NCBI GenBank assembly: GCA_025594325.1
Contig: JANHCV010000008.1
Location: 1,736,001 to 1,800,000, forward strand
DNA: 64,000 nt
Source: Blastocladiella emersonii ATCC 22665
Taxonomy: Eukaryota; Fungi; Blastocladiomycota
Direction of reading: 5' to 3'
A program made the translations under genes and the position numbers. Positions 3,076-49,926 of this stretch are shown piece by piece (position 1 is the first letter of the stretch; each line of letters starts with the position of its first letter). The notes under the pieces are model-generated. The model saw only the letters and a program-made list of their open reading frames with translations. It was not told where the DNA came from and ran no database searches.

Positions 3076-3245
3076 TCTGAATACAATCAATCGTCTCATT
3101 CAATGGCCAGTCACACACACGAGAGACGCGGGATGGGTGGGGGTATGTGCACGGCATGTATACAAGAGTACAGAATGGGACAGGACACGAAGGAGGGGGA
3201 GATATTCACAAAGGCGGCGGCGGGGAACCGGACCGGAGGGTGAGC

Positions 3246-3881: not shown

Positions 3882-5715
3882 GGTGGTGTTGGTGGTATTG
3901 CAGCAAGTTGTTGTCGGTGCAGAGGCGCGATTACATGAGCTGGTTGTGCGTTGGCGGGAGCGGCAGCGGCGCGCGGGGGCTCGCCGCCGTTTTGAAGGGC
4001 GCGCCGCGAGCACAGCGCGGGCTGTGAGAACGAACTCAATCGTCGCCGAGAGGGCGCGCGTGTGAGCGCGAGTGGTTCGCCCAAGTCAGCGAACGTCGCC
4101 TTCCAAAGTCAGCGGACGACGCCGCTGCGCTGCCGCTGCGGATCCACTCAGCCTCGCCGGTGTTGGCGGCGGTGTCGCTGGCCGTTTGCATCCCTTCTCG
4201 CCAACTCTCCAGCGTGATCGAGCTCCGTTTTCGCCACGGTGTAGGCTGGAAGCGTCATGACACGGGTTGGGACGCGCGGTGGTCACCATGCGCGAGCAGG
4301 AAGGCGGGTCGCGGGACTGGACGACATCCTCAGCGACGAGATTCGTGACGGTCCTTGACGCGTCGACGGACGTGACTACAGCGCGCTACCACGGTGTCGT
4401 GTGTGGCAATCCCGTCCTGTTTGGAGGGCTGGCGTAACAGGACGCGGGCATGGACGCTCGTGATCAACGCGATGATGCGGTGCCTCGACTCGACGGAAGG
4501 AAGCGCAACCGCTGCTCTTCTCGTCCGCATCCTTGGAGCCTGCCTTGGAGCTCTGCCGTGCGATGTCTGTACAGGAGACGTGAGATTTCTGAAGGGCGGC
4601 AGCCAAATCCGTGTCGGGGATCACGTCCCTAAACGTACGCCCGGCCGCCGCGGTGAGTCCGACGGCCGCCAACGACTAGACATATTCCTGATCTGGCTTC
4701 CATACTGCATAGCCGTCGACAGAGCGTCCCGCCTGGCCCTCGTGCTCGGGCAGGGCCTGAAGACTGTGCGAGGAAGTGCCGCGTCAACGGCAACGGTGGT
4801 CCTTGGCGAACGTGGACTTGTCGAGATCTCTCAGGCGGAGGCCAAGTCTTTGCGGCGGCCTTATGCGCACAGCATGGACGACACGTCCAACAACATACCG
4901 GTCTGCTGAATTCATGAGGGCGCTCACGCGTCGTGGCCAAGGTGCTCGGACAACCGAGGTGCGCGGCACACTTGTCACACGCACAGCAGGCACAATCGAG
5001 GTAACGGTGGACGACTGTTGATGGGGTGATGATGTGATGATCAAGTTGAGTTTGAGGACCAAAGTAGCAACGTAGTTTCCCGTGACGATGGAAACGGGCG
5101 AGGAGAGCTCAGAAACCGTGGTAAACGTGGTCCACATTCAAGCCGAGGGCTCGAGTCAGATAGAGCTAATACATATGGATTTACAGTTTCATCATCGCTG
5201 GACGTCGATGGCGACGACACGACGAGGTCGCCGTGGCCGTGGCCGCCAAGGCAGTCGATCGAGACGGTCAGAAAGCAGCAAGTGCGTGCGTGTATCTTCC
5301 CGGCACAACCGCGGGTCCCGGTGCGCCAGCCCACGAGTGAGCCGACGCGGCGACGGGCGGTTGTTGTAGGGAAGCGGCCGGGTCGCCGTTGTTTGTCCTA
5401 GGGCGGGTCCCGGCGCTCGGTCCGTCTGCACGGCTTCGAAACCCAGCACTGGGCGCTCGCGGCGGCGCGGCCAGCTGGGGGGTAAGTCGTGCAACAGGAT
5501 CAGCGATCGGGGAGGGCGAGGTCGGCGGCCAAGTTTTGGTCGGCCGTCGCGGGACGCGAGACGCGGTTGCGGGTGGCGCACGCCGCGCGGCGTGATGCGT
5601 TGCCACGGAGCCATCACCTCCCCCTGTTCTGTTCTGTTCGGGCTGGCGAATCACACAGAGACTCTCCCCATGTATGCGATGCAAATGGAGACACAAAGAT
5701 GACTCGTCAACAAAA

Positions 5716-7394
5716 CTAGTCGACGCGCTTGAGGTCGCCGAACAGCACGCCGCACGACTTGCACTTGCCGCCCGTGGCCTGCCGCATCGCGCACCGCTTG
5801 CACAGCGTCGGGCACCGGCACACGGACCCGCCGTACTCGATGGGTGCCTTGTGGCACACGAGGCAGAGCGGATCGGCGGTTGTGTGGTCGTGCTCGCTCG
5901 GGGTGGCGGCGGCAGCGACGCGCTCCTTGGGCTGCTGCTCGTGGTGGTGGTGATCCATGGCGGGAAGCGTGATGTGGTGCTGCTGCTGCTCTTGCTCTTG
6001 TTGTTGCGGGTGGTGATCTGCTCGCGAGAGAGGGGAAAGGCAGTGGGGCGTGAGTGAGTGAGTTGAGTGACCAGCGCGTCGTAAACCTTGTGCGCGACGT
6101 ACCGGAACCGTTCTCGGCACGAGCCAGAGACTGCTCCCACCGCGCGCGGACGAGGCCCAGCAACGTGTCCTGGTACCCGCCGCCCACGCCCTGGAAGCTG
6201 GGAAAGTAGTTGACGTCGACGAGGTACAGCCGCCGCTCGGCCGCGTGGTACACGGCGTCGAAGCCGAACAGGGTCAGGTTCTGTTGGTTACGAGTGAGGG
6301 GGTGAACGATCCAGGTCTGAGAGAGAGCGGAACGCGTACCATGGTGCTGGCGATCCGCTTGGTGAGCGCCGCGAGCTGGGCGCGGATCCCGTCCGAGTCG
6401 AGCCGCCGCGCCGTCTCTGCGCGGTCCTCGGCGGTCGCCGACAGGAACGCAGCCTGTACGGAGCCCATGGTTGATCCGTTGGTGGACTCGGGGAACGCCT
6501 TGGGGATGCGCTGCGAGTCGAACACGAGCGGCTCGCCTGGTGGACGCACGAGCTATGAGTGAGCGGACTGTGGTTCACGAGACTGAAATGACGTACCGAT
6601 GTCCTCCCAGCGGTCCTTGAGCGAAGGGCGGAGCAGCACATGGGGACGGTCGGGACCCAGGGCGTACACCTTGTACAGCACGCCGCCGTGCGGAACCAGC
6701 TGCTGGATCGTGACCTGCTCGTCGGAGTCAAAGGGTCCGCCCGCCACGAGCGCCGCCCACTGGGCAGGTCCGGCAACGACCGCCATGACGTGCGACGCGT
6801 GGCTCGAGCACGCCTCGTCGCGCTTGACGATGAGCGGGAACGGGCCCGTACCCGTACCACTGGGTGACGACGCGGACAGCTCGGCCGTAGCTGCCGCGAG
6901 CGTCGTCGCAGCGAGCGTGCGGGGTAGCGCCAAGACACCCTCGCTGTCCCCGGCCACGACGGCGGCGAGGGCCTCGGCCATGCGCTCGCGGCTCTGCAGC
7001 GGGACCAGCGACTCGACCGGGTCCATGAACGGCACGCGCGGGTGCGCCGCGCGGTACGCCACGACGCGGTCCCAGTGCGCCGTCGCATCGGGGTCGCCCG
7101 CCGTGAAGCCGAGAAACGTCTCGCTGAGCTTGTGCAGGATCACGTCAAAGGCGCCCTGCTCGGCAATGGGCCGCTCGAGCGAGATGAACGTGACGCGCAT
7201 GTTGTGCTTGGCGCTGGTGGCGTCGTCGCTGTTAGTTGGTGCTGGCTCCGAGAAAGCGGACGGGCAGCGTACGCGGCGTGCTCGGCGAGGCCGTCGAAGC
7301 CCGACTGCGCGCGCTTCTTGAGCGGGAAGATGACGCCGAGGTGCAGCGGCGGCATCGCCTGGTTCATGTCCACGTTTTCCATTGAAGGTTGCAT
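5716..7394 (-). CDS. ITPK1: Inositol-tetrakisphosphate 1-kinase (ITPK1, ATP-grasp), probable C-terminal RING-like exon; left-arm copy. Exons 7394-7273, 7228-6597, 6536-6340, 6280-6103, 6017-5716
   Basis: Mirror of the right-arm model. Motifs EQGAFDVILHKL, PLIVK, QQLVPHGGVLYKVY, LFGFD, LVDVNYFPSF. Confidence 0.8.
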
Positions 7395-7584
7395 CGAGTT
7401 GTGAGAGTTGTGAGGGGGGATCTTCGAGGGGAGGGAGCGGCGATGGGAGCTGGAGGGCGGCCACGGTCGGCGCGTCGCTCACCTCTTCTCGCCCGTTCAC
7501 CGCAACCTCACCCTGAAAGCGATGCATGTCTGGACGGGTATGGTTGTATATTCATCAGTCGACGTGGCCGAGACGCAGAGGCTA

Positions 7585-8426
7585 CTACTGCGGCGGTCGC
7601 GCGCGGCCCATGGGGCAGAAGTTGGCAAAGTGGCCCTTGCGGCCGCAGCGGAAGCAGACTATACGTGTGGGAGCGAGGGTGTCAGTCCAGGGATGAAGGA
7701 AGAGCGCAACGAGAGAGGGGGTGCACCAATGTGGTCGAGGCGGCCGTTGCTATTGTCGTCGCCCGCACCAGGACCGCCGCCGCCAAAGGGCCCGGAACCA
7801 CTGCCGTGGTGGAACTCGTCGTCGTCGACCGTCGGGACCTCAAACTTGGGGTGGCCGTTGGCGCACGCCTTGCCGTACGGGCAGAAGCCGGCCAGGTACA
7901 GCAGGCACGGCGTCTTCTTGATGTGCTTGTTCTTGCAGCTCGGGCCGTGGCGGCAGAAGCCGCGCGCGAACCACGGGCACTCGCGCACCTTGGAGCTCGG
8001 GTCGACGTGGCGGTACTCGCACTCGGGGTTCGAGCACTCGCCGTACTTTGCAAAGAACCAGCACTCGGGCATCTTGCGCAGGTTGTACTCGTGCAGGAAC
8101 TCGCACGCGTCGCTCTTCTTGCACAGGCCGCGCAGCCAGTGCTTGCACACCACCTTGCGCGACGGCGGCGGGTGCCGGAACGGGCAGCGCACGCCGAGCG
8201 CGCACGTCTGCCCGCGCACGTACGACCGGCACGGCGGCGGCCGCGTCGGCACGAGCGCGATCCCGAGGTCCGACGCGACAAACTCTTCAAAGTCGAACAC
8301 AAAGTCGTCGGCCGATGCGGACGCGACGGCTGTTGTTGGGGTGGGGCCGTTCGCCGTCGCCGCGAGGGCCGGCTGCGGCACGCCGGGCGCAGCAAAGGAC
8401 GGGAGGCGCGGCAGCGTCGATGTCAT
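7585..8426 (-). CDS. YTH1: CPSF30/YTH1 mRNA 3'-processing factor (5 CCCH fingers plus CCHC knuckle); left-arm copy, intron 7659-7726
   Basis: VCKHWLRGLCKKSDACEFLHEYNLRKMPEC and ECPWFARGFCRHGPSCKNKH. Mirror of 31589-32430. Confidence 0.93.
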
Positions 8427-9043
8427 GGTTGTCGTGTCGGCGCCGCGTCGTCGTTGCAGCGAGTATACATGGGCGGGTGGTGTTGTTGGAAGGGGGAGAG
8501 GATGAGGGAAGCGACGACGTCGCTGTGGACGACGACGCAGGGCGGCCCGCTCTCACGCTCTCCCGTGCGACCGCCGCTCTCTCTCGCTTTTCGGCCGTGA
8601 CATGCAATCGACCTCATGAACACGAATGAACGGACGGGCGGCGTCGCGATGGTGGACTCGCGGCCGTGACGGCGGCGGTCTCACCGTCGACGCCGCACCG
8701 CCACCCGCGCGCGGCCCTCGTCTCAAGAACCGTGCCGCGCCGTATCGCAGACGGTGGATGGTGGTGGGCCTGGCGTTCGGGGATCCATCGCTGACTCGGC
8801 CGGTCTCACCGTGCGCCGCAGCGACCGCGACGTCGCGTCCACTCGCCCGCCTCGGCCGGCCCGGCGACGCCCAGCCCGTGCCGATTCGACCGCGCTCCGG
8901 ACCGCAGCTGCTGTACCGCAGGCCGCCGTCGGGATCCAGGGCGCGCGGGTTTCGGGTGCCGCCGTCGCCCTCGGTGAACGACGCGGCGACGACTATTTCC
9001 GGACCCGCCTCGCCTCCACTGCCCACCGCTCGCGTCGGAGATG

Positions 9044-9048
9044 TATAA
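9044..9048 (+). promoter_or_regulatory. Possible TATA box for the 9115 ORF (mirror at 30967-30971)
   Basis: TATAA in otherwise very GC-rich DNA, about 67 nt upstream of the ATG. Confidence 0.3.
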
Positions 9049-9114
9049 GGGCCCGGCGTCCCCGCCGCTGCCTGCACGCGCGCTCGCTACTCGATCAACC
9101 GCTCCCAGACCACC

Positions 9115-9873
9115 ATGTCCGTCGCCAACTTTGCCAGCACCGCCGCCGTCCAGTCGCAGACGCAGATGGCCGCGGGCGCGCCGGCCGACGTCGCGCAGCT
9201 CCTGTCGCAGCTCCAGTCGCAGCTGGCTCAGTCCCAGCAGCAGGCGCAGCAGCAGCAGGCACACGGTGCCGTCGCCGCACCTGGTCCCGCCACCACCACT
9301 GCCTTCTCGGCCCCCGCCGCGAGCTCTTCCTCGTCCATGTCGACCGCGTCCACGACGCTATCCAACGGCGAGACCCACACCACGACCCTCGTCAACGGCG
9401 TGCCCGTCGGTCACCACCAGCAGCAGGGCCAGTTTGACGGCCACGGGGCCACCGCCTTCGGCAGCGACTACGCGGGATGGCCCTCGACGGGCTCCTCGCA
9501 CCATGACACGTCGTCCTCGTTCCCGGCCCACGACTCGGCCAGCGGATACGGCACTTGGAACGCCAACTCGCACGACGCATGCTGGCCCACCGCAACGGGC
9601 AACACGGACGCGTTCCACACTTCCTCGACGGGCAACCACGGCGACGTGTTCACGCTCGGCTCCGGGTTCGGCGGCGACGCCTTTGTCGCGTCCGCCGGTC
9701 CCGCTCAGGCGACCTCGACCGACCACTCGGCCGCGTTCGGCGGCGGCGGCGGCGGCAACTGGCAGTCGACCTCGAGCCAGACGACGACGGGCGCCGACGG
9801 CCAGTCCGTGACCGTGACCACGGTCGACGGGTCGCACCTGCCGCACGAGATGACCTCGGTCAGCTTTGCCTGA
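9115..9873 (+). CDS. Unknown 252-aa low-complexity Gln/Ser/Thr/Gly/His-rich protein; left-arm copy
   Basis: ATG in ACCATG context, C/G-biased codons, Q-rich N-terminus. No domain recognised. Confidence 0.7.
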   Translation: MSVANFASTAAVQSQTQMAAGAPADVAQLLSQLQSQLAQSQQQAQQQQAHGAVAAPGPATTTAFSAPAASSSSSMSTASTTLSNGETHTTTLVNGVPVGHHQQQGQFDGHGATAFGSDYAGWPSTGSSHHDTSSSFPAHDSASGYGTWNANSHDACWPTATGNTDAFHTSSTGNHGDVFTLGSGFGGDAFVASAGPAQATSTDHSAAFGGGGGGNWQSTSSQTTTGADGQSVTVTTVDGSHLPHEMTSVSFA

Positions 9874-10407
9874 GGTTCCGATCGTGCTGGGCGGCGCTGG
9901 TTAGCTTATATACACTCTTCCCGTGACGACTCGGTTTGGTCCCCTTCGATGCAAGCATTGTGGGGGGCAGGAATGGATTACACGGGCCGGCTGAGGGTGG
10001 CGCTGGTACTCCGCTTCCGGCGAAGCCAAGGTTACCACTTGATCTCGACGGGGACGCTGGTGTTCGTGAGGAAAAGGGCCGTTGAAGGTTTCAAGTCCAC
10101 GCGGGTGGCGCGACGCGTCTTCGCTGCTCATGTCCTCTGTACTCGACAAGTGTCGCTGCTGCGGGCATTGATGTGAAGGTCAGAAGGGAGCGCCACAATG
10201 GCTCCAGTACAATTCCATGGAACAAGTCAAGAACAGGGAAACCAAAACACGGGCGAGCGGAGAGGGGAGAGTTGGGAATCGAAGGGGAACGAGTACGAGC
10301 AAAGGGGAGTCGAGGGGGAGCAAGAGAAAAGGAGGCGGGTGAGGAGACATGGGAAGGGGAACATCAAGTGGAGGAAGGTAGGGAGGGGAGGAGAGCACGG
10401 TCCTCGG

Positions 10408-13102
10408 TCAGCGCGCCCAGCACCGGCACGGTGTTGATGATGGTGATGATGTCGTTCTTGCACTCGAGCTGTTGCGGTGGTGGTGGTGGTGGTGGTGAGG
10501 TTGAACTTGCGGAAGCGTGGTTGCAGTTGCAGTCGAGCTCGAAGTGGTGCCGGTGCCGGTGGTGGTGGTGCGGGTGTGGATGGGATGCGGGTACGAGGCG
10601 GGCGCGCTGACCGAGCAGGTTGAGTGTCGAGGGTGTTGAGGGTGTTGAGCTCGAAGTTGTTGATGCTTGGGGTTGTCGATGCTTGAGTGTTGATGAACCG
10701 ACCGGCCTACACGCGCGCGGATCAGGTCAGTCAACGGGGCAACGATACATGAGCGAAAGAACAGAGGGAGAACATACACAGCGTGTGCGGATCAGGGTCG
10801 ACGCCGTCGCGGCCACGCGCACCCATCGGGGCACGCACGGACATCGCGCGGCTGGCCAACCTCGCCTGAACGAGTGGCCAAGAACCGGCCTCCGGCCTAC
10901 ACGGTGCGAGCACGAACGAGTCAGTCATCCGGATCACGCGAGGGAGGCCGAGAAGCAGGAGAAGACGTACGCTTACTGCGCGGGGCGTGCTCTGCCGCTA
11001 CCGCGCACCTCAACAGGGCGCGGGTCTCTGCGGCCAACCACCTCGCGCCTTGCGCGAGGGGCCAGGGGCTTGGGCCGGGCCTACACGGAACAGACACACG
11101 CGCGCGGGTTAGTCACGGAGATCGATCGTCGATACGCGCGAGAGTGCCGAGGACGTACGCTTTGCGCGCGGCCGAACCCACTGGTCTTGTGCCCCGCGCT
11201 CTGCTGCAGAGCGCGGGTCAACCGGTTCGCAGCACCGGCCTCTCACGGGCCAGGCGCGACACCGGGCCACGCACGCTCGCGCATCAAACGCGGGACTTTT
11301 TTTTTTCTTGCCTCGCCCGCACGCCCGAATATGACCTCGAAGAGGCCCTCGTGGCGTGCGGCGCTGAGGCGCCGGTCCGACCCCGGTCGCGATCCGCTCG
11401 GTCGCACCACCGCGACACACACTCGCACTCTTGGCGAGCGGCGCGGCGGTGGGGCCACGCTCCTTGGCGCGGCTGTCGGCGGAAGGGGACCCGTGTGGAC
11501 GGCGGCCGCGGCGCCCCCGCGAGGGAACGCGCCGCAAGGGCCGCCGTGGTCGAACCGGAATACTTGCGGCCGCTGTGCGTGCCGGGCACTATTGGCCCGC
11601 GACACGCTCTGCTGGCCGCTCACCGTGGTTGTAGTGGTGTCGATGAGCTGGTGGTGGTGGTGCCTTCCGAGGTGAGCCGTCAAGGCTGCCGGCGGTGGCA
11701 GCCTGCGACTGGACCTGGATGGCGGGGTCCCCGGGCAGTAGCACGCGCGAAATGCTCGCGGCGGCGGCGAGCGGCTCGAGTGAACCACCCACACACACGC
11801 GTACGCGAGCAAGTGCGGTACCCGCTACCCGAGGCGACGTGCCGAGGGAACCGCCGTCGCGGCGCGCTTGACTTGACTTGAGGAGCAGGCCGCGGAGCGA
11901 GCGCGTTGGGGTCGTACTCGCTGCGGCCTCTCAGCGCGCGACGGCGGATGTCGGGACGTCGTAGCTAACCGTGACGGGCTGGACCGCGTACAGCTGGGGC
12001 GAGGAGAAGGTACTCGAGAACTCGGACTGGGAGCCCTCGAGGTCGTCGTCTCTCGCGCGAGCTGCTTGAGGGTCGGGACCGAGGAGGAGGCGTGGCGGCG
12101 ACGCAGAAAAGGGTCGGGTGCGTCGCCGCGCCTCGGTCCACGCGGTAGAGCCGGTCGGGCACGCCGGCGCGCGGGCCACTGTGGTCGGTGACAGCGACGT
12201 TGCGAGACCGGGACAGCGAGGAAGCGTGGGGAGCGGGCGCCCGTCGGCCTGCGGGGTGCAGGCGACACGGCAACCCGGACCCCTCTTCCTCACCGTCCCT
12301 TGCCCGTCTGTGGGGCGTGGTCTCGCGCGGAAGCCGTCGGACCCGCGCGTGCCGGAGGTGCTGGTAGTGGTGGGGCGATCGAGTCGAGCTGCGTGATCTG
12401 GCGCGAGGTCGGTGGTACTCGATGGCGGCCGTGGCGGTCGCGACGGCAGCGGCGGCAAACGTGGGGCGGCCGCGCGTCGGACGCGCGCGTGTGTGGATCC
12501 CGCGACAGGATCGGGTGCGAGGAGGCGATGGGCGAGCGAGCGAACCGCGGGTCGTGGCGGCGCTGCTGGTGCCGTCGACTCGCGCGCGGGATCGGGATCG
12601 TGACCTGGTGGTGGTGATGGTCGGTCGTATCGCGCGACCGGTGTCGTCGCCCGTCTGGCCAGCGAGCCTGGCTGACAAGGACGTGCGAGAAAAGGGACCG
12701 GTAGCGGCGCCCCGCGCGGGCCGGCCGACTCGAGAAAGGGCACGAGTGCGGCTGTGGCAGCGGGCGGCGGGACGCAATCTCAAGCGAGTGACGCTGGGTG
12801 GTCGACACGCGAGAGAAAGCGTGTAGGGGCGTGAGCGCGTCGTCCGGCGCGATGATCTGGATGGATGGATGGACGAGAAGTACCGCCGAACTGCTCCTGG
12901 TACGAGTACAGGTACAGGTACTGGCCGAGGAACGAGGTGGCGAGCAGGTGCGGCGGACTTGGGGTGGGTGGCCGGTCGTGGCCGGGCGGCGACAGGTCGT
13001 CGCAGCTGCGGAACGCGTCCTTAGAAAGACGCGAACGTGGCCATGACCGTCGTGGTAGTGCGCGGGTACTGGGCGCGCGGTCTCGGCGAGCGAGACGGAC
13101 AT
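10408..13102 (-). other. Cryptic spliced locus or decayed gene; left-arm copy of 26913-29607
   Basis: Mirror of three canonical intron-like units; no coherent long reading frame. Confidence 0.35.
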
Positions 13103-14829
13103 GATTGTGAACGTGAAGAACAGGCAGATGCCGGCGCCTTGAGAAAAGCGCGCGGATGTACGGCAAAAGGACTCGCGCGCGGCGGTCGCGGTAGTGGACG
13201 CCTGCGGCGAGTCGGCGCGGGGGCTCGCTCGGTCGTGTCGTTGATCAGGTCGACCGAGTCAATAGTCAGTCGTGGCGGGAATACGCGTGACCATGATGAT
13301 CTGCATGGGGACGCGGAAGCGCGCCGCGACGTGGCTGGCCGGCCGGTTGCCGTGTACCGTGGGTGGGTGATGTGGTGGAACCGGGTGCGGCCGCGGATGG
13401 GTCAAAAATCAAAAAGAACAAACACACGGGCGTCGAGGTGCGGAATGCACTCTACACGGGCGACGCGACGCGACGAGTCAGCTGGCCGTGTCCGCCAAGG
13501 CGGGTATCAGCAGCAGCGCGAGATCCGTACCAAGAGGCCTGGATCTCGGTGTGGTGTGGTGTGGCGGGTCGCGACTCTCGAGGAGCTGGTACTGGTGGTA
13601 CTGCCGGTACTGGTAGCCCTGGTGGTGCGCGAGCCCGTGTACGCGTGGCACGAGGTAGTCGAGGCCGGGACGTGAGCTGCGAGACGATCTCTCGCGGTAT
13701 CGGGCCGTCGGTCGACCTGGCCGTGAGCGTGAGCGTGAGCGTGAGCTTGTAGGTACCGCCGCCGTAGTTGAGCGTGGCGGCGAAAATCGTCGAGATAGTC
13801 GGCGCGCTTGGGGCCGGATGACGCGCGCGTGCGAGATCGACGACAATTTTCCCACTGGATCGGCATCGGTGCATGTGAACGTATGCGTTCGGGGCCACTC
13901 CGAGAGCTTTGGCGGCGTCCACGGATCCGCCGCTCTCGCCCGACCACCCAAAAGTACGGATGTACGGGGGTCGAGGCCATGGGAGCGAGTGGGCAATGCA
14001 CCGATGCCGTCCGTACCAGTGGGTCGTGGACGTTGTTGAGTTTGGCCGAGTGCTCGCCGTCGTACCCTCGCAGGATGGCCGGGACGACTTGAGCTGCTTG
14101 CTGGCCTTGGGGCACCGAGTCGCGGACGGCGGGGGCCATGCCGTGCGTGTGTGTACGAGACGCGGTCGGTGCGGGTGCTACGACGACTCGATCGGGACGA
14201 GCGCAATCTTGGTCTGCGGCCGATGATAGAGACGATGCGAGTCGTTCGTGTAGTAGCGGGTGGCGGCCGTGCAGCGCGAGAAGATGGTCGTCGCGCGACG
14301 GCTCGCCGTTGCTCGGAGCCGAGGCCGAGGAATCGACGTTGAGCTGGCGTCGATGGCCGTGCCGGTGACGCGGTCGCGTGCCTGCGAGCGAGCCGAGCAG
14401 GTGCTCGGGACCACGGCGACCGGCGGCCGGGTGCCTGCCCGACACGAGGAGCGCCGAGTACGTGTCGCGCGATCTGGGTCGGGCCGGAACTCGGTGTCGG
14501 CGGGCGCGGCACGGGGCGCGCCGGCAATGACACGACACGAGGTCGCGGCGGCCGCGGGCCGTGGGCCGTGGGACCGCTGGCGTCAAGGAGGGGACTCGAG
14601 CGCCCAGTTGAACTTGTTTTTGCGTTTCTACTTTTGCAGCTGTTTTTGCCGACAGAGTGCCGGGATTTCGTGATTTACTACACAGGAGGGAGTGAGTCGG
14701 GAGCCCGGGACGCGGCCACAGACGGAAAACGTACGAGAACGAGGACGAGAAGAAGGCCAGCCGATGAGCGCGCCGAACGGAAAGCAAAGATGAGAGCAGG
14801 GTGGCGAGGTCCGAGCGAGTCGTTGATTA

Positions 14830-20100: not shown

Positions 20101-20780
20101 GCCGGGCAGCGACTCCGGCTGTGAGATCGGGCTCCCGGTAAGGTCGAGAGCAGCGGGAGGCCACGGTCAGATTGTCGCATGGGCTTCTCCCAGCGAGATC
20201 AAGGTAAGAGAGATCTCGCAGGTCGGACGAGGGGCCGGGTCGGCGTCGGCGGCGTCGACCTCGTCACGGCGACCTCGGCCGACGGCGCGGAACAACGCAG
20301 AGATGCATTGCGGGCAGTTCTGCGGGTATGGGACCGGCGGAAAAGAGGTGCACCGCGACTCCTGGAGGGGCTCGGTGTCCCATCCGAGCGCCGCAGCGTG
20401 TCTCACCTCGGCTCACGCGATCGCGACGCGCAACGCGTTGCTCATCCTCGTCGACGACCGCCGCAAGCCCGTCGGTCCTCTGTCCCACGACGACCATGGC
20501 GACCATGAACGAACGAGTGCTCGTGCAACGGGCCGAGACGGCGACCAGACGGGCGGGTCGGGGCATCCGCCGCCGCAGCGGTGGTCGCTCCCGCGCGCCC
20601 ACGAGCCGACCATGGACCAAGCATGCGAACGTGGACGAGATGGATGTGTGAGCATGGATGGCGACGGGAGGAGTAGTGCGGGAGCCGGTGGCGGCTGATT
20701 GCAGGGTGAGAGTCGCGTGTGGCGTTCATCATCATCATCACCGCGTCGGTCGGCCGTACCGGCGGATCACCGGGCCGATC

Positions 20781-20835
20781 ACCGACCGCCGACCACCGAC
20801 CGCCGACCACCGACCACCGACCACCGACCACCGAC
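20781..20835. repeat. Heptamer minisatellite (A/G)CCGACC x8
   Basis: Read directly from the sequence. Confidence 0.9.
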
Positions 20836-21579
20836 TAACGTCGCCCGTGCCGCCGCGCGGGATCCACGGGACTACTTGATAGCTACCGCGCGCGGGCACC
20901 GCCGGCGTCGGCGCATCGCATTGCATCCAGTCGCATCCCGACTCGTCCATCTCGTTCGCCCGCGACCCGCCGTCCGAAATCATCGCGCGAGAGAGCGACC
21001 GTCGGTAACGGGCGCGGCGCTCGCTTTCACTTGCCCTCCGCCACGCTCGAACCAGAGTTCGAACCACGGTCCGCCCGCCGCGGTCCGCCACACGCACGCG
21101 GCGGCGCCGCGCTGTCTCCCGCCGGCGCACCCTTCCACTCGCGCGCCGCGCCGCGCCGTGTTCGCGTCCGCGGGTCCGCACCGGCCCTCGACCAATCATG
21201 TCGCGAGGCGCTCGATCGCCGCTTCGTTAGCGGAGCGGGCACTCGGCGCAACGCGTCCCGCACAAGTGTCTCGCGCCGACCCGCCCGCACGTGCTGCGCC
21301 GCGCCCGTGTCTCCGCCGGTGCGCGTGCGCCGACGCGTCGCGCGTCTCCCTGAAAGATGTCCACCGCGCCGACGCGTCGCGCGCGCCGTGCCGTGCACCG
21401 CGGCACCCGCCGTGCCCGCCCGCCGTGCCCGCCCGCCGCGATGCCCCTGCACTCCATGTCGCGGCATCGTCCGCCTCTGCTCTGCTCGTCATTGAAGAGA
21501 TTGAGAAAGTGTATGAGATACAACCTGCTGTAAAGCACGAACCCACCCGGATCCAGAACCACGCGGTCTCGTCGTCAAG

Positions 21580-25314: not shown

Positions 25315-26912
25315 GTAGCGCTCGCCTACCTCCCCCTTTTCTACCCTTTGCTTTACTTTCCGTTTTGCGTTTTCGTCACCAAAAAAAACCAACGAAACCC
25401 GAAAAAAAGCTTCGACCAGCCGTGTGCGCACCCTCGCGCGCACGCGCCCATCTCGGCCCGCGGCCGCCGCGACCTCGTGTCGTGTCATTGCCGGCGCGCC
25501 CCGTGCCGCGCCCGCCGACACCGAGTTCCGGCCCGACCCAGATCGCGCGACACGTACTCGGCGCTCCTCGTGTCGGGCAGGCACCCGGCCGCCGGTCGCC
25601 GTGGTCCCGAGCACCTGCTCGGCTCGCTCGCAGGCACGCGACCGCGTCACCGGCACGGCCATCGACGCCAGCTCAACGTCGATTCCTCGGCCTCGGCTCC
25701 GAGCAACGGCGAGCCGTCGCGCGACGACCATCTTCTCGCGCTGCACGGCCGCCACCCGCTACTACACGAACGACTCGCATCGTCTCTATCATCGGCCGCA
25801 GACCAAGATTGCGCTCGTCCCGATCGAGTCGTCGTAGCACCCGCACCGACCGCGTCTCGTACACACACGCACGGCATGGCCCCCGCCGTCCGCGACTCGG
25901 TGCCCCAAGGCCAGCAAGCAGCTCAAGTCGTCCCGGCCATCCTGCGAGGGTACGACGGCGAGCACTCGGCCAAACTCAACAACGTCCACGACCCACTGGT
26001 ACGGACGGCATCGGTGCATTGCCCACTCGCTCCCATGGCCTCGACCCCCGTACATCCGTACTTTTGGGTGGTCGGGCGAGAGCGGCGGATCCGTGGACGC
26101 CGCCAAAGCTCTCGGAGTGGCCCCGAACGCATACGTTCACATGCACCGATGCCGATCCAGTGGGAAAATTGTCGTCGATCTCGCACGCGCGCGTCATCCG
26201 GCCCCAAGCGCGCCGACTATCTCGACGATTTTCGCCGCCACGCTCAACTACGGCGGCGGTACCTACAAGCTCACGCTCACGCTCACGCTCACGGCCAGGT
26301 CGACCGACGGCCCGATACCGCGAGAGATCGTCTCGCAGCTCACGTCCCGGCCTCGACTACCTCGTGCCACGCGTACACGGGCTCGCGCACCACCAGGGCT
26401 ACCAGTACCGGCAGTACCACCAGTACCAGCTCCTCGAGAGTCGCGACCCGCCACACCACACCACACCGAGATCCAGGCCTCTTGGTACGGATCTCGCGCT
26501 GCTGCTGATACCCGCCTTGGCGGACACGGCCAGCTGACTCGTCGCGTCGCGTCGCCCGTGTAGAGTGCATTCCGCACCTCGACGCCCGTGTGTTTGTTCT
26601 TTTTGATTTTTGACCCATCCGCGGCCGCACCCGGTTCCACCACATCACCCACCCACGGTACACGGCAACCGGCCGGCCAGCCACGTCGCGGCGCGCTTCC
26701 GCGTCCCCATGCAGATCATCATGGTCACGCGTATTCCCGCCACGACTGACTATTGACTCGGTCGACCTGATCAACGACACGACCGAGCGAGCCCCCGCGC
26801 CGACTCGCCGCAGGCGTCCACTACCGCGACCGCCGCGCGCGAGTCCTTTTGCCGTACATCCGCGCGCTTTTCTCAAGGCGCCGGCATCTGCCTGTTCTTC
26901 ACGTTCACAATC

Positions 26913-29607
26913 ATGTCCGTCTCGCTCGCCGAGACCGCGCGCCCAGTACCCGCGCACTACCACGACGGTCATGGCCACGTTCGCGTCTTTCTAAGGACGC
27001 GTTCCGCAGCTGCGACGACCTGTCGCCGCCCGGCCACGACCGGCCACCCACCCCAAGTCCGCCGCACCTGCTCGCCACCTCGTTCCTCGGCCAGTACCTG
27101 TACCTGTACTCGTACCAGGAGCAGTTCGGCGGTACTTCTCGTCCATCCATCCATCCAGATCATCGCGCCGGACGACGCGCTCACGCCCCTACACGCTTTC
27201 TCTCGCGTGTCGACCACCCAGCGTCACTCGCTTGAGATTGCGTCCCGCCGCCCGCTGCCACAGCCGCACTCGTGCCCTTTCTCGAGTCGGCCGGCCCGCG
27301 CGGGGCGCCGCTACCGGTCCCTTTTCTCGCACGTCCTTGTCAGCCAGGCTCGCTGGCCAGACGGGCGACGACACCGGTCGCGCGATACGACCGACCATCA
27401 CCACCACCAGGTCACGATCCCGATCCCGCGCGCGAGTCGACGGCACCAGCAGCGCCGCCACGACCCGCGGTTCGCTCGCTCGCCCATCGCCTCCTCGCAC
27501 CCGATCCTGTCGCGGGATCCACACACGCGCGCGTCCGACGCGCGGCCGCCCCACGTTTGCCGCCGCTGCCGTCGCGACCGCCACGGCCGCCATCGAGTAC
27601 CACCGACCTCGCGCCAGATCACGCAGCTCGACTCGATCGCCCCACCACTACCAGCACCTCCGGCACGCGCGGGTCCGACGGCTTCCGCGCGAGACCACGC
27701 CCCACAGACGGGCAAGGGACGGTGAGGAAGAGGGGTCCGGGTTGCCGTGTCGCCTGCACCCCGCAGGCCGACGGGCGCCCGCTCCCCACGCTTCCTCGCT
27801 GTCCCGGTCTCGCAACGTCGCTGTCACCGACCACAGTGGCCCGCGCGCCGGCGTGCCCGACCGGCTCTACCGCGTGGACCGAGGCGCGGCGACGCACCCG
27901 ACCCTTTTCTGCGTCGCCGCCACGCCTCCTCCTCGGTCCCGACCCTCAAGCAGCTCGCGCGAGAGACGACGACCTCGAGGGCTCCCAGTCCGAGTTCTCG
28001 AGTACCTTCTCCTCGCCCCAGCTGTACGCGGTCCAGCCCGTCACGGTTAGCTACGACGTCCCGACATCCGCCGTCGCGCGCTGAGAGGCCGCAGCGAGTA
28101 CGACCCCAACGCGCTCGCTCCGCGGCCTGCTCCTCAAGTCAAGTCAAGCGCGCCGCGACGGCGGTTCCCTCGGCACGTCGCCTCGGGTAGCGGGTACCGC
28201 ACTTGCTCGCGTACGCGTGTGTGTGGGTGGTTCACTCGAGCCGCTCGCCGCCGCCGCGAGCATTTCGCGCGTGCTACTGCCCGGGGACCCCGCCATCCAG
28301 GTCCAGTCGCAGGCTGCCACCGCCGGCAGCCTTGACGGCTCACCTCGGAAGGCACCACCACCACCAGCTCATCGACACCACTACAACCACGGTGAGCGGC
28401 CAGCAGAGCGTGTCGCGGGCCAATAGTGCCCGGCACGCACAGCGGCCGCAAGTATTCCGGTTCGACCACGGCGGCCCTTGCGGCGCGTTCCCTCGCGGGG
28501 GCGCCGCGGCCGCCGTCCACACGGGTCCCCTTCCGCCGACAGCCGCGCCAAGGAGCGTGGCCCCACCGCCGCGCCGCTCGCCAAGAGTGCGAGTGTGTGT
28601 CGCGGTGGTGCGACCGAGCGGATCGCGACCGGGGTCGGACCGGCGCCTCAGCGCCGCACGCCACGAGGGCCTCTTCGAGGTCATATTCGGGCGTGCGGGC
28701 GAGGCAAGAAAAAAAAAAGTCCCGCGTTTGATGCGCGAGCGTGCGTGGCCCGGTGTCGCGCCTGGCCCGTGAGAGGCCGGTGCTGCGAACCGGTTGACCC
28801 GCGCTCTGCAGCAGAGCGCGGGGCACAAGACCAGTGGGTTCGGCCGCGCGCAAAGCGTACGTCCTCGGCACTCTCGCGCGTATCGACGATCGATCTCCGT
28901 GACTAACCCGCGCGCGTGTGTCTGTTCCGTGTAGGCCCGGCCCAAGCCCCTGGCCCCTCGCGCAAGGCGCGAGGTGGTTGGCCGCAGAGACCCGCGCCCT
29001 GTTGAGGTGCGCGGTAGCGGCAGAGCACGCCCCGCGCAGTAAGCGTACGTCTTCTCCTGCTTCTCGGCCTCCCTCGCGTGATCCGGATGACTGACTCGTT
29101 CGTGCTCGCACCGTGTAGGCCGGAGGCCGGTTCTTGGCCACTCGTTCAGGCGAGGTTGGCCAGCCGCGCGATGTCCGTGCGTGCCCCGATGGGTGCGCGT
29201 GGCCGCGACGGCGTCGACCCTGATCCGCACACGCTGTGTATGTTCTCCCTCTGTTCTTTCGCTCATGTATCGTTGCCCCGTTGACTGACCTGATCCGCGC
29301 GCGTGTAGGCCGGTCGGTTCATCAACACTCAAGCATCGACAACCCCAAGCATCAACAACTTCGAGCTCAACACCCTCAACACCCTCGACACTCAACCTGC
29401 TCGGTCAGCGCGCCCGCCTCGTACCCGCATCCCATCCACACCCGCACCACCACCACCGGCACCGGCACCACTTCGAGCTCGACTGCAACTGCAACCACGC
29501 TTCCGCAAGTTCAACCTCACCACCACCACCACCACCACCGCAACAGCTCGAGTGCAAGAACGACATCATCACCATCATCAACACCGTGCCGGTGCTGGGC
29601 GCGCTGA
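26913..29607 (+). other. Cryptic spliced locus or decayed gene; right-arm copy
   Basis: Intron-like units 28857-28934, 29039/29045-29118 and 29238-29308, each with a GT(A)YGT/GTAAGC donor, CTRAC branch point and CGTGTAG acceptor. Short coding-like stretches are broken by frame changes. Confidence 0.35.
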
Positions 29608-30141
29608 CCGAGGACCGTGCTCTCCTCCCCTCCCTACCTTCCTCCACTTGATGTTCCCCTTCCCATGTCTCCTCACCCGCCTCCTTTTCTCTTGCTCCCC
29701 CTCGACTCCCCTTTGCTCGTACTCGTTCCCCTTCGATTCCCAACTCTCCCCTCTCCGCTCGCCCGTGTTTTGGTTTCCCTGTTCTTGACTTGTTCCATGG
29801 AATTGTACTGGAGCCATTGTGGCGCTCCCTTCTGACCTTCACATCAATGCCCGCAGCAGCGACACTTGTCGAGTACAGAGGACATGAGCAGCGAAGACGC
29901 GTCGCGCCACCCGCGTGGACTTGAAACCTTCAACGGCCCTTTTCCTCACGAACACCAGCGTCCCCGTCGAGATCAAGTGGTAACCTTGGCTTCGCCGGAA
30001 GCGGAGTACCAGCGCCACCCTCAGCCGGCCCGTGTAATCCATTCCTGCCCCCCACAATGCTTGCATCGAAGGGGACCAAACCGAGTCGTCACGGGAAGAG
30101 TGTATATAAGCTAACCAGCGCCGCCCAGCACGATCGGAACC

Positions 30142-30900
30142 TCAGGCAAAGCTGACCGAGGTCATCTCGTGCGGCAGGTGCGACCCGTCGACCGTGGTCA
30201 CGGTCACGGACTGGCCGTCGGCGCCCGTCGTCGTCTGGCTCGAGGTCGACTGCCAGTTGCCGCCGCCGCCGCCGCCGAACGCGGCCGAGTGGTCGGTCGA
30301 GGTCGCCTGAGCGGGACCGGCGGACGCGACAAAGGCGTCGCCGCCGAACCCGGAGCCGAGCGTGAACACGTCGCCGTGGTTGCCCGTCGAGGAAGTGTGG
30401 AACGCGTCCGTGTTGCCCGTTGCGGTGGGCCAGCATGCGTCGTGCGAGTTGGCGTTCCAAGTGCCGTATCCGCTGGCCGAGTCGTGGGCCGGGAACGAGG
30501 ACGACGTGTCATGGTGCGAGGAGCCCGTCGAGGGCCATCCCGCGTAGTCGCTGCCGAAGGCGGTGGCCCCGTGGCCGTCAAACTGGCCCTGCTGCTGGTG
30601 GTGACCGACGGGCACGCCGTTGACGAGGGTCGTGGTGTGGGTCTCGCCGTTGGATAGCGTCGTGGACGCGGTCGACATGGACGAGGAAGAGCTCGCGGCG
30701 GGGGCCGAGAAGGCAGTGGTGGTGGCGGGACCAGGTGCGGCGACGGCACCGTGTGCCTGCTGCTGCTGCGCCTGCTGCTGGGACTGAGCCAGCTGCGACT
30801 GGAGCTGCGACAGGAGCTGCGCGACGTCGGCCGGCGCGCCCGCGGCCATCTGCGTCTGCGACTGGACGGCGGCGGTGCTGGCAAAGTTGGCGACGGACAT
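30142..30900 (-). CDS. Unknown 252-aa low-complexity protein; right-arm copy
   Basis: Identical translation to 9115-9873. Confidence 0.7.
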   Translation of the reverse strand: MSVANFASTAAVQSQTQMAAGAPADVAQLLSQLQSQLAQSQQQAQQQQAHGAVAAPGPATTTAFSAPAASSSSSMSTASTTLSNGETHTTTLVNGVPVGHHQQQGQFDGHGATAFGSDYAGWPSTGSSHHDTSSSFPAHDSASGYGTWNANSHDACWPTATGNTDAFHTSSTGNHGDVFTLGSGFGGDAFVASAGPAQATSTDHSAAFGGGGGGNWQSTSSQTTTGADGQSVTVTTVDGSHLPHEMTSVSFA

Positions 30901-31588
30901 GGTGGTCTGGGAGCGGTTGATCGAGTAGCGAGCGCGCGTGCAGGCAGCGGCGGGGACGCCGGGCCCTTATACATCTCCGACGCGAGCGGTGGGCAGTGGA
31001 GGCGAGGCGGGTCCGGAAATAGTCGTCGCCGCGTCGTTCACCGAGGGCGACGGCGGCACCCGAAACCCGCGCGCCCTGGATCCCGACGGCGGCCTGCGGT
31101 ACAGCAGCTGCGGTCCGGAGCGCGGTCGAATCGGCACGGGCTGGGCGTCGCCGGGCCGGCCGAGGCGGGCGAGTGGACGCGACGTCGCGGTCGCTGCGGC
31201 GCACGGTGAGACCGGCCGAGTCAGCGATGGATCCCCGAACGCCAGGCCCACCACCATCCACCGTCTGCGATACGGCGCGGCACGGTTCTTGAGACGAGGG
31301 CCGCGCGCGGGTGGCGGTGCGGCGTCGACGGTGAGACCGCCGCCGTCACGGCCGCGAGTCCACCATCGCGACGCCGCCCGTCCGTTCATTCGTGTTCATG
31401 AGGTCGATTGCATGTCACGGCCGAAAAGCGAGAGAGAGCGGCGGTCGCACGGGAGAGCGTGAGAGCGGGCCGCCCTGCGTCGTCGTCCACAGCGACGTCG
31501 TCGCTTCCCTCATCCTCTCCCCCTTCCAACAACACCACCCGCCCATGTATACTCGCTGCAACGACGACGCGGCGCCGACACGACAACC

Positions 31589-32430
31589 ATGACATCGACG
31601 CTGCCGCGCCTCCCGTCCTTTGCTGCGCCCGGCGTGCCGCAGCCGGCCCTCGCGGCGACGGCGAACGGCCCCACCCCAACAACAGCCGTCGCGTCCGCAT
31701 CGGCCGACGACTTTGTGTTCGACTTTGAAGAGTTTGTCGCGTCGGACCTCGGGATCGCGCTCGTGCCGACGCGGCCGCCGCCGTGCCGGTCGTACGTGCG
31801 CGGGCAGACGTGCGCGCTCGGCGTGCGCTGCCCGTTCCGGCACCCGCCGCCGTCGCGCAAGGTGGTGTGCAAGCACTGGCTGCGCGGCCTGTGCAAGAAG
31901 AGCGACGCGTGCGAGTTCCTGCACGAGTACAACCTGCGCAAGATGCCCGAGTGCTGGTTCTTTGCAAAGTACGGCGAGTGCTCGAACCCCGAGTGCGAGT
32001 ACCGCCACGTCGACCCGAGCTCCAAGGTGCGCGAGTGCCCGTGGTTCGCGCGCGGCTTCTGCCGCCACGGCCCGAGCTGCAAGAACAAGCACATCAAGAA
32101 GACGCCGTGCCTGCTGTACCTGGCCGGCTTCTGCCCGTACGGCAAGGCGTGCGCCAACGGCCACCCCAAGTTTGAGGTCCCGACGGTCGACGACGACGAG
32201 TTCCACCACGGCAGTGGTTCCGGGCCCTTTGGCGGCGGCGGTCCTGGTGCGGGCGACGACAATAGCAACGGCCGCCTCGACCACATTGGTGCACCCCCTC
32301 TCTCGTTGCGCTCTTCCTTCATCCCTGGACTGACACCCTCGCTCCCACACGTATAGTCTGCTTCCGCTGCGGCCGCAAGGGCCACTTTGCCAACTTCTGC
32401 CCCATGGGCCGCGCGCGACCGCCGCAGTAG
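31589..32430 (+). CDS. YTH1: CPSF30/YTH1, 257 aa; intron 32289-32356; last exon encodes the zinc knuckle VCFRCGRKGHFANFCP
   Basis: Five CCCH fingers. Phase-1 intron GTGCAC...CTGAC...TATAG yields a CX2CX4HX4C knuckle before the stop at 32428-32430. Confidence 0.93.
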
Positions 32431-32620
32431 TAGCCTCTGCGTCTCGGCCACGTCGACTGATGAATATACAACCATACCCGTCCAGACATGCATCGCTTTC
32501 AGGGTGAGGTTGCGGTGAACGGGCGAGAAGAGGTGAGCGACGCGCCGACCGTGGCCGCCCTCCAGCTCCCATCGCCGCTCCCTCCCCTCGAAGATCCCCC
32601 CTCACAACTCTCACAACTCG

Positions 32621-34299
32621 ATGCAACCTTCAATGGAAAACGTGGACATGAACCAGGCGATGCCGCCGCTGCACCTCGGCGTCATCTTCCCGCTCAAGAA
32701 GCGCGCGCAGTCGGGCTTCGACGGCCTCGCCGAGCACGCCGCGTACGCTGCCCGTCCGCTTTCTCGGAGCCAGCACCAACTAACAGCGACGACGCCACCA
32801 GCGCCAAGCACAACATGCGCGTCACGTTCATCTCGCTCGAGCGGCCCATTGCCGAGCAGGGCGCCTTTGACGTGATCCTGCACAAGCTCAGCGAGACGTT
32901 TCTCGGCTTCACGGCGGGCGACCCCGATGCGACGGCGCACTGGGACCGCGTCGTGGCGTACCGCGCGGCGCACCCGCGCGTGCCGTTCATGGACCCGGTC
33001 GAGTCGCTGGTCCCGCTGCAGAGCCGCGAGCGCATGGCCGAGGCCCTCGCCGCCGTCGTGGCCGGGGACAGCGAGGGTGTCTTGGCGCTACCCCGCACGC
33101 TCGCTGCGACGACGCTCGCGGCAGCTACGGCCGAGCTGTCCGCGTCGTCACCCAGTGGTACGGGTACGGGCCCGTTCCCGCTCATCGTCAAGCGCGACGA
33201 GGCGTGCTCGAGCCACGCGTCGCACGTCATGGCGGTCGTTGCCGGACCTGCCCAGTGGGCGGCGCTCGTGGCGGGCGGACCCTTTGACTCCGACGAGCAG
33301 GTCACGATCCAGCAGCTGGTTCCGCACGGCGGCGTGCTGTACAAGGTGTACGCCCTGGGTCCCGACCGTCCCCATGTGCTGCTCCGCCCTTCGCTCAAGG
33401 ACCGCTGGGAGGACATCGGTACGTCATTTCAGTCTCGTGAACCACAGTCCGCTCACTCATATCTCGTGCGTCCACCAGGCGAGCCGCTCGTGTTCGACTC
33501 GCAGCGCATCCCCAAGGCGTTCCCCGAGTCCACCAACGGATCAACCATGGGCTCCGTACAGGCTGCGTTCCTGTCGGCGACCGCCGAGGACCGCGCAGAG
33601 ACGGCGCGGCGGCTCGACTCGGACGGGATCCGCGCCCAGCTCGCGGCGCTCACCAAGCGGATCGCCAGCACCATGGTACGCGTTCCGCTCTCTCTCAGAC
33701 CTGGATCGTTCACCCCCTCACTCGTAACCAACAGAACCTGACCCTGTTCGGCTTCGACGCCGTGTACCACGCGGCCGAGCGGCGGCTGTACCTCGTCGAC
33801 GTCAACTACTTTCCCAGCTTCCAGGGCGTGGGCGGCGGGTACCAGGACACGTTGCTGGGCCTCGTCCGCGCGCGGTGGGAGCAGTCTCTGGCTCGTGCCG
33901 AGAACGGTTCCGGTACGTCGCGCACAAGGTTTACGACGCGCTGGTCACTCAACTCACTCACTCACGCCCCACTGCCTTTCCCCTCTCTCGCGAGCAGATC
34001 ACCACCCGCAACAACAAGAGCAAGAGCAGCAGCAGCACCACATCACGCTTCCCGCCATGGATCACCACCACCACGAGCAGCAGCCCAAGGAGCGCGTCGC
34101 TGCCGCCGCCACCCCGAGCGAGCACGACCACACAACCGCCGATCCGCTCTGCCTCGTGTGCCACAAGGCACCCATCGAGTACGGCGGGTCCGTGTGCCGG
34201 TGCCCGACGCTGTGCAAGCGGTGCGCGATGCGGCAGGCCACGGGCGGCAAGTGCAAGTCGTGCGGCGTGCTGTTCGGCGACCTCAAGCGCGTCGACTAG
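32621..34299 (+). CDS. ITPK1: ITPK1-like kinase with probable C-terminal RING-like zinc finger, ~476 aa. Exons 32621-32742, 32787-33418, 33479-33675, 33735-33912, 33998-34299
   Basis: Four GTACG(C/T)...YAG introns, all phase-compatible; ATP-grasp ITPK motifs; last exon CLVCH...CRC...LCKRC...KCKSC. The last exon could instead be an independent small gene. Confidence 0.8.
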
Positions 34300-35379
34300 T
34301 TTTGTTGACGAGTCATCTTTGTGTCTCCATTTGCATCGCATACATGGGGAGAGTCTCTGTGTGATTCGCCAGCCCGAACAGAACAGAACAGGGGGAGGTG
34401 ATGGCTCCGTGGCAACGCATCACGCCGCGCGGCGTGCGCCACCCGCAACCGCGTCTCGCGTCCCGCGACGGCCGACCAAAACTTGGCCGCCGACCTCGCC
34501 CTCCCCGATCGCTGATCCTGTTGCACGACTTACCCCCCAGCTGGCCGCGCCGCCGCGAGCGCCCAGTGCTGGGTTTCGAAGCCGTGCAGACGGACCGAGC
34601 GCCGGGACCCGCCCTAGGACAAACAACGGCGACCCGGCCGCTTCCCTACAACAACCGCCCGTCGCCGCGTCGGCTCACTCGTGGGCTGGCGCACCGGGAC
34701 CCGCGGTTGTGCCGGGAAGATACACGCACGCACTTGCTGCTTTCTGACCGTCTCGATCGACTGCCTTGGCGGCCACGGCCACGGCGACCTCGTCGTGTCG
34801 TCGCCATCGACGTCCAGCGATGATGAAACTGTAAATCCATATGTATTAGCTCTATCTGACTCGAGCCCTCGGCTTGAATGTGGACCACGTTTACCACGGT
34901 TTCTGAGCTCTCCTCGCCCGTTTCCATCGTCACGGGAAACTACGTTGCTACTTTGGTCCTCAAACTCAACTTGATCGTCACGATCTTCACCGCCATGACT
35001 CCTCCCTGCCCGTCCTCCCTTGCCGTGCGTGTGACAAGTGTGCCACGTACCACGGACGTAACCGTCCAGCCGCCACGCCCGCGGCGTGCGAGCGTCCTCG
35101 TTGTCGCGGAAGTCCGTCCAGCTGCGCTTTCTCGTATTCACGCAGCGCGGAAGCCCGCGCTACAGCCAAGTCGTTTAGCACGAGCCCGTTCAAGTATCCC
35201 TGTCAAACTCGCATCCAATGAGGCAGCGGCACTCACCGCTGTCGCGGCGCGTCCTGCTCGGACTCCAGGCCGCACACGAAGGGCACGACGATACGTCCGG
35301 CCGAGAGGAGCGCACGGGAGCGTCGAGAGTAAATGAAGAACCTATGTACATGGATGGGGATTCATTGCACCACACAGCG

Positions 35380-49925: not shown

Positions 49926-49926
49926 A

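Follow-up and report, generated by a model that had tools for sequence, protein, structure and literature searches.

A 30-kb palindrome with near-identical, gene-bearing arms in the nuclear genome of Blastocladiella emersonii

Introduction

Why should a fungal nuclear genome hold the same 9.5 kilobases (kb), housekeeping genes included, twice over as mirror images around a unique spacer, and what has made or kept the two copies alike? The question is posed by a 64,000-nucleotide (nt) stretch of contig JANHCV010000008.1 of Blastocladiella emersonii ATCC 22665 (assembly GCA_025594325.1, positions 1,736,001 to 1,800,000), which we call the window; positions given below are window positions, that is, record positions minus 1,736,000. 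Large palindromes maintained by gene conversion are best known on sex chromosomes; their supposed role there is the protection of genes lacking a recombination partner. To our knowledge, B. emersonii, an early-diverging zoosporic fungus, has no known sex chromosome and no known sexual cycle. An earlier reading of the bare sequence (hereafter the original prediction) had singled out the palindrome as a candidate invertible cassette or gene-conversion palindrome, with the caveat that a fold-back chimera could produce identical arms. Here, we show that the palindrome is a genuine inverted duplication in the nuclear genome, and argue that it is best read as an inverted segmental duplication whose arms have been made or kept identical by recombinational copying.

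Results

Near-identical arms with asymmetric edges

A repeat search and a base-by-base comparison place the arms of the palindrome at 5034-14561 and 25454-34981, each 9,528 nt long. They are free of insertions and deletions relative to each other, and 9,526 of the 9,528 nt of the left arm equal the reverse complement of the right arm (99.98% identity). One of the two mismatches, 5038/34977, is the fifth base from the outer edge, and the other, 6553/33462, is internal. The original prediction, which had called for such an exact alignment, placed the arms at 5039-14561 and 25454-34976 without an indel; this is precisely the stretch inside the edge mismatch, but its count of a single substitution becomes two over the full arms. 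The internal difference falls in a 60-nt GTACGT..CAG intron of the gene ITPK1, which encodes an ITPK1-type inositol phosphate kinase, a stretch that the annotated protein, P0122, omits and that opens with the same GTACG donor as the other introns of the gene. Because this difference is confined to the intron, both arm copies encode identical proteins. A reading of the same site as a nonsense mutation of the left ITPK1 copy (TAG versus TAT) is ruled out by the fact that P0122 skips the 60 nt concerned.

The edges of the arms are asymmetric. Past the outer edge, decayed homology between the two sides extends for about 120 nt (local alignment score of 51, against 16.1 +/- 2.4 for shuffled sequences; z = 14.8), so that, at a distance of at most about 120 nt, a tract of about 73 nt with roughly 75-80% identity neighbours 9.5 kb of sequence holding a single difference. 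This margin includes an exact 20-mer that occurs, within the window, only at these two sites, and no further occurrence of which was found in about 110 kb of the B. emersonii genome examined. Such a decayed margin beside 9.5 kb of near-identical sequence may mean that the duplication is far older than the identity of its arms implies. Beyond about 120 nt the outer flanks are unrelated to each other. The inner flanks are likewise unrelated, and decayed homology sought beyond the inner edge did not appear (z = 1.0 against shuffles). Searches for short hairpins and inverted repeats at the four boundaries, and for tRNAs, Rfam RNAs and dispersed and tandem repeats in arms and spacer, yielded nothing relevant, and the GC content of the arms compared with that of the flanks carries no signal of GC-biased conversion.

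An older duplication orders the events

The locus overlaps an old segmental duplication shared with contig JANHCV010000007.1 (contig 7), of which record positions 138027-161396 were compared at the DNA level (locus L005). L005 7836-12427 matches window 19345-23858, L005 13356-14826 matches 25300-26846 in a block that crosses the right spacer/arm junction, and L005 15306-15940 matches 26920-27561. In a three-way alignment, the contig-7 paralog tracks the right junction, while the left junction departs from it exactly at 14561|14562, a breakpoint that sits in a GGGCCGT GGGCCGT direct repeat. Thus, since the contig-7 homology spans the right spacer/arm junction, that junction is the ancestral one; of the two arms it is the left that is derived, and the breakpoint at its inner end is new. 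The duplicated segment of about 8 kb contains the 3' part of an RRG7-like gene, the orphan membrane-protein gene whose counterparts in the spacer are B1 and B2 (P0125 on contig 7) and 2.5 kb downstream of it; the innermost 2.1 kb of the non-coding part of the arm is a piece of it. Its left edge, at 19345, cuts through the homologue of a gene that contig 7 carries in full, which marks the copy in the window as truncated and derived. Moreover, the arm includes the far edge of the old duplication (27561, equivalent to 12454 when mirrored), and the inverted copy therefore postdates it. The YTH1 and ITPK1 genes of B. britannica lie side by side and point the same way, single-copy and set among other genes, with no palindrome. 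This arrangement indicates that the gene pair is ancestral and its duplication lineage-specific.

Two real copies of the arm

The assembly was built from PacBio HiFi reads with a mean length of 10.5 kb, drawn from 13.7-kb fragments, by the La Jolla Assembler and purge_dups, and was then polished with GAIIx reads by Pilon (PMC9730499). With such lengths, some reads can span an arm. We compared the public contigs of four runs from the source sample, all of one strain (X1 of 2022; X2-X4 of 2021), over positions 2200-8100. In X1, which is probably the HiFi run, a flank contig of 7.5 kb with a depth of 137.5 stops at 5068, and a 4,365-nt arm contig with a depth of 242.2 begins at 5039. The break at 5039 marks a branch point of the de Bruijn graph that coincides exactly with the edge of the arm, and X2, a separate run on the same sample, has the same two contigs with the same break. 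The word depth of the arm in X1 is 1.76 times that of the flank, the remaining single-copy contigs of this run lying at 129-137; common k-mer counters may cap at 255, in which case the ratio may be an undercount. In X2 the depths are noisy, the arm standing at 45.4 and the single-copy contigs anywhere in the range 24.9-42.6, and the two low-depth 2021 runs give arm/flank ratios of about 1.2-1.4. Of the twofold depth that the original prediction had set down as a check, X1 offers a value above single copy, and the 2021 runs, at about 1.1-1.4, do not bear it out. The right inner junction is present in both X1 and X2, as judged from a 61-nt stretch centred on it (3/3 sampled 31-mers). The fold-back caveat is answered by outer flanks that are mutually unrelated and by an arm depth above single copy.

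The low ratio of the 2021 runs may be low-depth noise, or a hint of a duplication not yet fixed in the older DNA preparation. As a separate observation on these libraries, contigs of X4 terminate in a loxP-like adaptor, ATAACTTCGTATAGCATACA (loose ends at 3189, 5666 and 5962), which suggests a Cre-lox mate-pair library with untrimmed adaptors.

Genes of the arms and spacer

Annotation, Pfam and the codon-usage profile agree that each arm consists of ITPK1, YTH1/CPSF30, an orphan gene and a non-coding remainder (Table 1). Of the duplicated genes foreseen from the sequence, at least three in number and YTH1 among them, three are thereby confirmed. The YTH1 protein is annotated twice on contig JANHCV010000008.1, in opposite orientations, and is 100% identical to the reading frame in the window; its annotated product indicates an intron in the gene. 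The annotated ITPK1 protein ends in a Cys-rich RING-like finger that is missing, as judged by length, from the 362-amino-acid (aa) orthologue of B. britannica.

Table 1. Features of the palindrome and its margins (window positions)
Feature	Position	Strand	Basis or remark
Decayed homology outside left arm	4916-5033		Pairs with 34982-35100; local alignment
Left arm, derived copy	5034-14561		Inner end is a novel breakpoint
ITPK1-like kinase, left copy; 462 aa, H9P43_006978-type product, C-terminal RING-like finger	5716-7367	-	Pfam, annotation
Sole internal arm difference	6553 (C) vs 33462 (T on + strand; A in left-arm orientation)		ITPK1 intron
YTH1/CPSF30, left copy; 257 aa, five CCCH zinc fingers	7585-8426	-	Pfam, annotation
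252-aa orphan, left copy	9115-9873	+	Annotation, strong codon bias, no family found
Non-coding arm part, 4.7 kb	9874-14561 (mirror 25454-30141)		No annotated gene, Pfam hit or codon-usage signal
Unique spacer, 10,892 nt	14562-25453		Gene A, 4.4 kb without coding signal, split gene B1/B2
Gene A, orphan, 740 aa; signal peptide, one membrane span; distant relative of B1	14675-17135	-	Annotation, codon usage
Old segmental duplication shared with contig JANHCV010000007.1	19345-27561	+	83-85% identity; gap at 23859-25299; crosses right spacer/arm junction
Gene B1 (H9P43_006974), orphan membrane protein	21580-23202	+	69% identical to P0125 of contig 7
Gene B2, 637 aa	23333-25314	+	Continues B1 in contig-7 paralog; cut off here by in-frame TAG at 23279
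Right arm, inner end in ancestral context	25454-34981		Contig-7 paralog (L005) collinear across 25453|25454
252-aa orphan, mirror copy	30142-30900	-	Annotation
YTH1/CPSF30, right copy	31589-32430	+	Annotation
ITPK1-like kinase, right copy	32648-34299	+	Annotation
Decayed homology outside right arm	34982-35100		Pairs with 4916-5033; local alignment

In the middle of the spacer, the 4.4 kb of non-coding sequence separates gene A on the minus strand from B1 and B2 on the plus strand. None of the three belongs to a Pfam family, and a search of 5.8 billion proteins returned no relative of B1 of comparable length. P0125, a protein of 1,026 aa encoded on contig 7, is 69% identical to B1 and runs on into the start of B2; B1 and B2 are thus a single gene in the contig-7 paralog. 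In the window, this gene is split at 23199-23333, where the reading frame, past a 70-nt GTAAGT..TAG intron, runs into an in-frame TAG at 23279-23281, so that the annotation calls two genes. The split gene is perhaps a copy in decay. With B2 as the query, an exhaustive phmmer search recovers B2 itself and one paralog, P0125, which has no domain. A and B1 are collinear remote relatives (z = 9.6 against shuffles), and the C-terminal part of A is unrelated to B2. The mirrored arrangement of A and B had suggested an older palindrome nested in the spacer, a candidate that is weakened by the 69% identity of B1 to the contig-7 gene and by the lack of relationship between the C-terminal part of A and B2. 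A role of B2 as a Helitron-like Rep protein found no confirmation in Pfam, in phmmer or in a structure model whose predicted local distance difference test score (pLDDT) of 32 makes it unusable.

Across the 30 kb, Pfam searches of the arm open reading frames (ORFs) of at least 75 aa and of the main spacer ORFs returned no tyrosine or serine recombinase, transposase, integrase or mating-type (HMG, homeodomain or alpha-box) domain; here the original prediction, which had seen no transposase, recombinase or target-site duplication, is borne out. The palindrome also shows a strong mirrored GC skew, of +0.15 to +0.22 over 10000-16000 and -0.15 to -0.21 over 22000-30000, extending over the inner, non-coding portions of the arms as well as the outer genes of the spacer.

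Right flank and satellite

To the right of the palindrome, a satellite begins at about 50.3 kb, 15.3 kb past the right arm, and at least four genes with recognisable conserved domains lie between the two. These are the apparently intact housekeeping genes that had been noted at this place, and they encode a DUF1275 protein, a PHD/bromodomain protein, cytidylate kinase and a Sec2p-type guanine nucleotide exchange factor. An end of the spacer abutting silencing chromatin (centromere or telomere), as in flip-flop switching, is thus not seen here. The 138-nt satellite is organised in units that recur at exactly 3,049 nt over 54705-64000, and a further block, at 50291-51247, is oppositely oriented. 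The end of the contig comes 1.5 kb beyond the window, inside the satellite array, where the assembly breaks; the satellite is a candidate centromeric or subtelomeric array. At its border lie two ORFs with RNase H domains, at 48981-49958 (+) and 51211-52851 (+), with E values of 9e-11 and 1e-14. The ORFs neighbouring them contain no reverse-transcriptase or endonuclease domain, so that a call as a long interspersed nuclear element (LINE) is only partly supported.

Discussion

The observations above fit a history in which the structure was assembled in steps. We put at about one in two the probability that the palindrome is an old inverted duplication, 9.5 kb of which have since been homogenised by arm-to-arm gene conversion, as in the palindromes of sex chromosomes. 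On this reading, the older 8-kb contig-7 segment would have been inserted beside the ancestral YTH1-ITPK1 pair. Later, the 9.6 kb whose ends lie just downstream of B2 and just downstream of ITPK1 would have been copied, inverted, to a place beyond gene A, creating the new breakpoint at 14561|14562. The arms may since have been kept identical by ordinary homologous recombination, in the form of gene conversion between the arms that calls for no dedicated enzyme, and the outermost 120 nt or so would have escaped this homogenisation and decayed. Were the arms to cross over with each other, the spacer would be inverted, as a passive and infrequent by-product with no regulatory meaning. We infer that conversion continues and that inversion happens occasionally. 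On this reading, the locus would show, side by side, an old dispersed duplication, an inverted copy, a homogenised core and a decayed margin.

Several findings weigh against homogenisation of an old duplication. The identity of the arms reaches the novel inner breakpoint without a decayed margin, for which a single recent act of copying accounts equally well, and a very young duplication, too, would give one difference in 9.5 kb. The arm/flank ratio of the 2021 runs, noisy as it is, does not make two fixed copies evident in those libraries. The mirrored A/B pair, for its part, lends little to the idea of an older palindrome, given that the close relative of B is located on contig 7 and that A is no more than a remote member of the family. 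A rival that we regard as possible, with less credence than homogenisation, is a one-off and very recent inverted duplication without later homogenisation, the arms of which are identical because they are young. In this scenario, either a broken end or a fork stalled at the left site would invade a pre-existing, diverged inverted homology of about 120 nt at 34982-35100, break-induced replication would copy 9.5 kb leftwards, and a template switch would return it at 14562. Such a course explains the asymmetric edges, that is, the perfect identity that adjoins a decayed 120 nt on one side and stops on the other at a sharp novel breakpoint in a direct repeat, as well as the presence of at most one difference in 9,528 nt. 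A depth ratio below 2 in all four runs, lowest in those of 2021, fits a duplication that is not fixed in every stock, with the proviso that the 1.76 of X1 may understate the true value if the counter saturates. On the other side of the ledger, a young duplication needs a short inverted homology to have been in place already at the future outer edge, and the 20-mer core of this homology is absent elsewhere in the roughly 110 kb examined.

The other explanations lose more ground to the evidence. That the second arm is unreal, as a fold-back or a mis-join of haplotypes, or that more divergent copies were homogenised by the assembler or by Pilon, is improbable. False palindromes arising from mis-joined haplotypes are documented (PMC8494291), this assembly was purged of haplotigs and polished with short reads unable to distinguish the arms, and the contigs of a run lose rare variants, so that differences between the arms could stay hidden; yet the outer flanks are mutually unrelated, as are the inner ones, which is unlike a fold-back, the arm in the HiFi run is well above the depth of its flank, the branch at 5039 recurs in a second, independent library, and one phased difference persists 1.5 kb inside the arm. 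A regulated cassette, in which recombination between the arms would flip the spacer and switch the expression of A and B in the manner of mating type in Ogataea and Komagataella, is in our judgment very unlikely. It has the geometry, long inverted repeats around a unique segment, and a satellite block about 15 kb away that might mark a centromere or chromosome end; against it stand the absence from spacer and arms of any mating-type, recombinase or regulatory domain in Pfam, the orphan status of the spacer genes, and the split of B by a stop relative to its paralog. Furthermore, as 9.5 kb of identical sequence lie at both ends of the spacer, an inversion alters no local promoter-gene junction, intact housekeeping genes separate the palindrome from the satellite, and the single continuous assembly path would argue against two equally common isomers. 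Thus, of the two possibilities put forward in the original prediction, the gene-conversion palindrome is the most likely reading, whereas the flip-flop switch has no positive evidence, neither a recombinase nor a mating-type or other regulatory gene having been found in the ORFs searched. Least probable is that the palindrome is a mobile element whose terminal inverted repeats are of giant size, or a relative of Helitrons with B2 as its replication protein. A protein-language-model look-up does place B2 nearest to the Helitron_like_N/DUF6570 clusters (score 0.89, 149/256 features, low recognition), but B2 has no Pfam match even at E values up to 10, and neither its phmmer matches, limited to itself and the domain-less paralog, nor its single-sequence structure model helps the case. 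The arms carry conserved host genes in their ancestral adjacency, no target-site duplication or integrase was found, and contig 7 holds a paralog of just a portion of the unit.

Structures of this type are known, and one in a blastoclad fungus is reported neither in the genome paper nor in the literature that we searched. Palindromes go unmentioned in the genome paper, from which the words "inverted", "palindrom" and "centromer" are absent (PMC9730499). If homogenisation by conversion is the right account, a housekeeping-gene palindrome in an early-diverging and apparently asexual fungus would offer a small, culturable study system in which the origin of a palindrome, the rate of conversion between its arms and the frequency of spacer flips could be measured. 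A wider proposition, which we advance tentatively, is that large gene-bearing palindromes occur genome-wide in B. emersonii and are continuously homogenised by arm-to-arm gene conversion, as an autosomal counterpart of the palindromes of the Y chromosome. A bolder variant holds that the left arm is unfixed in some laboratory stocks, with ratios of about 1.1-1.4 in 2021 against 1.76 or more in 2022; if so, the birth or loss of a palindrome could be watched in culture. In practical terms, the duplication of YTH1 and ITPK1 matters for gene knockouts in B. emersonii, an emerging model for optogenetics.

The palindrome can be set beside four known systems. In Ogataea polymorpha and Komagataella phaffii, mating type is switched by the flip-flop of a segment between inverted repeats. 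The Blastocladiella locus resembles these in that a unique segment sits between inverted repeats, through which homologous recombination could invert it, with a repeat-rich block nearby. It differs in having no MAT genes and much longer repeats, and its inversion would move no gene beside the satellite, from which 15 kb of expressed-looking genes separate it. The inverted repeats of plastids, of 10-25 kb, are copy-corrected, and their flip-flop isomers are equimolar in a multicopy genome. They share with the present case long repeats kept identical by recombination and the passive inversion of the enclosed single-copy region; the Blastocladiella palindrome, in contrast, is a nuclear locus, assembled in one orientation. 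A cautionary parallel comes from the first assembly of Adineta vaga, the palindromes of which subsequently proved artefactual, a product of mis-joined haplotypes (PMC8494291). There too, gene-bearing palindromes were reported from the assembly of a putatively asexual organism, but in B. emersonii the flanks are unrelated, the depth of the arm exceeds single copy and the branch point is common to two libraries. The closest likeness is to the palindromes of mammalian sex chromosomes (P1-P8 of the human Y, and those of the primate and mouse X), which are described as kept more than 99.9% identical through arm-to-arm gene conversion (PMC8600007, PMC8327919, PMC8981503). Both have arms of about 10 kb or more with near-perfect identity, a unique spacer on the kilobase scale, intact genes in the arms and no dedicated enzyme, and the diverged homology beside the identical tract in Blastocladiella may point to homogenisation there as well. 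Where the sex-chromosome palindromes carry testis-type gene families, the arms of the Blastocladiella palindrome carry housekeeping genes of single-copy type, YTH1 and ITPK1.

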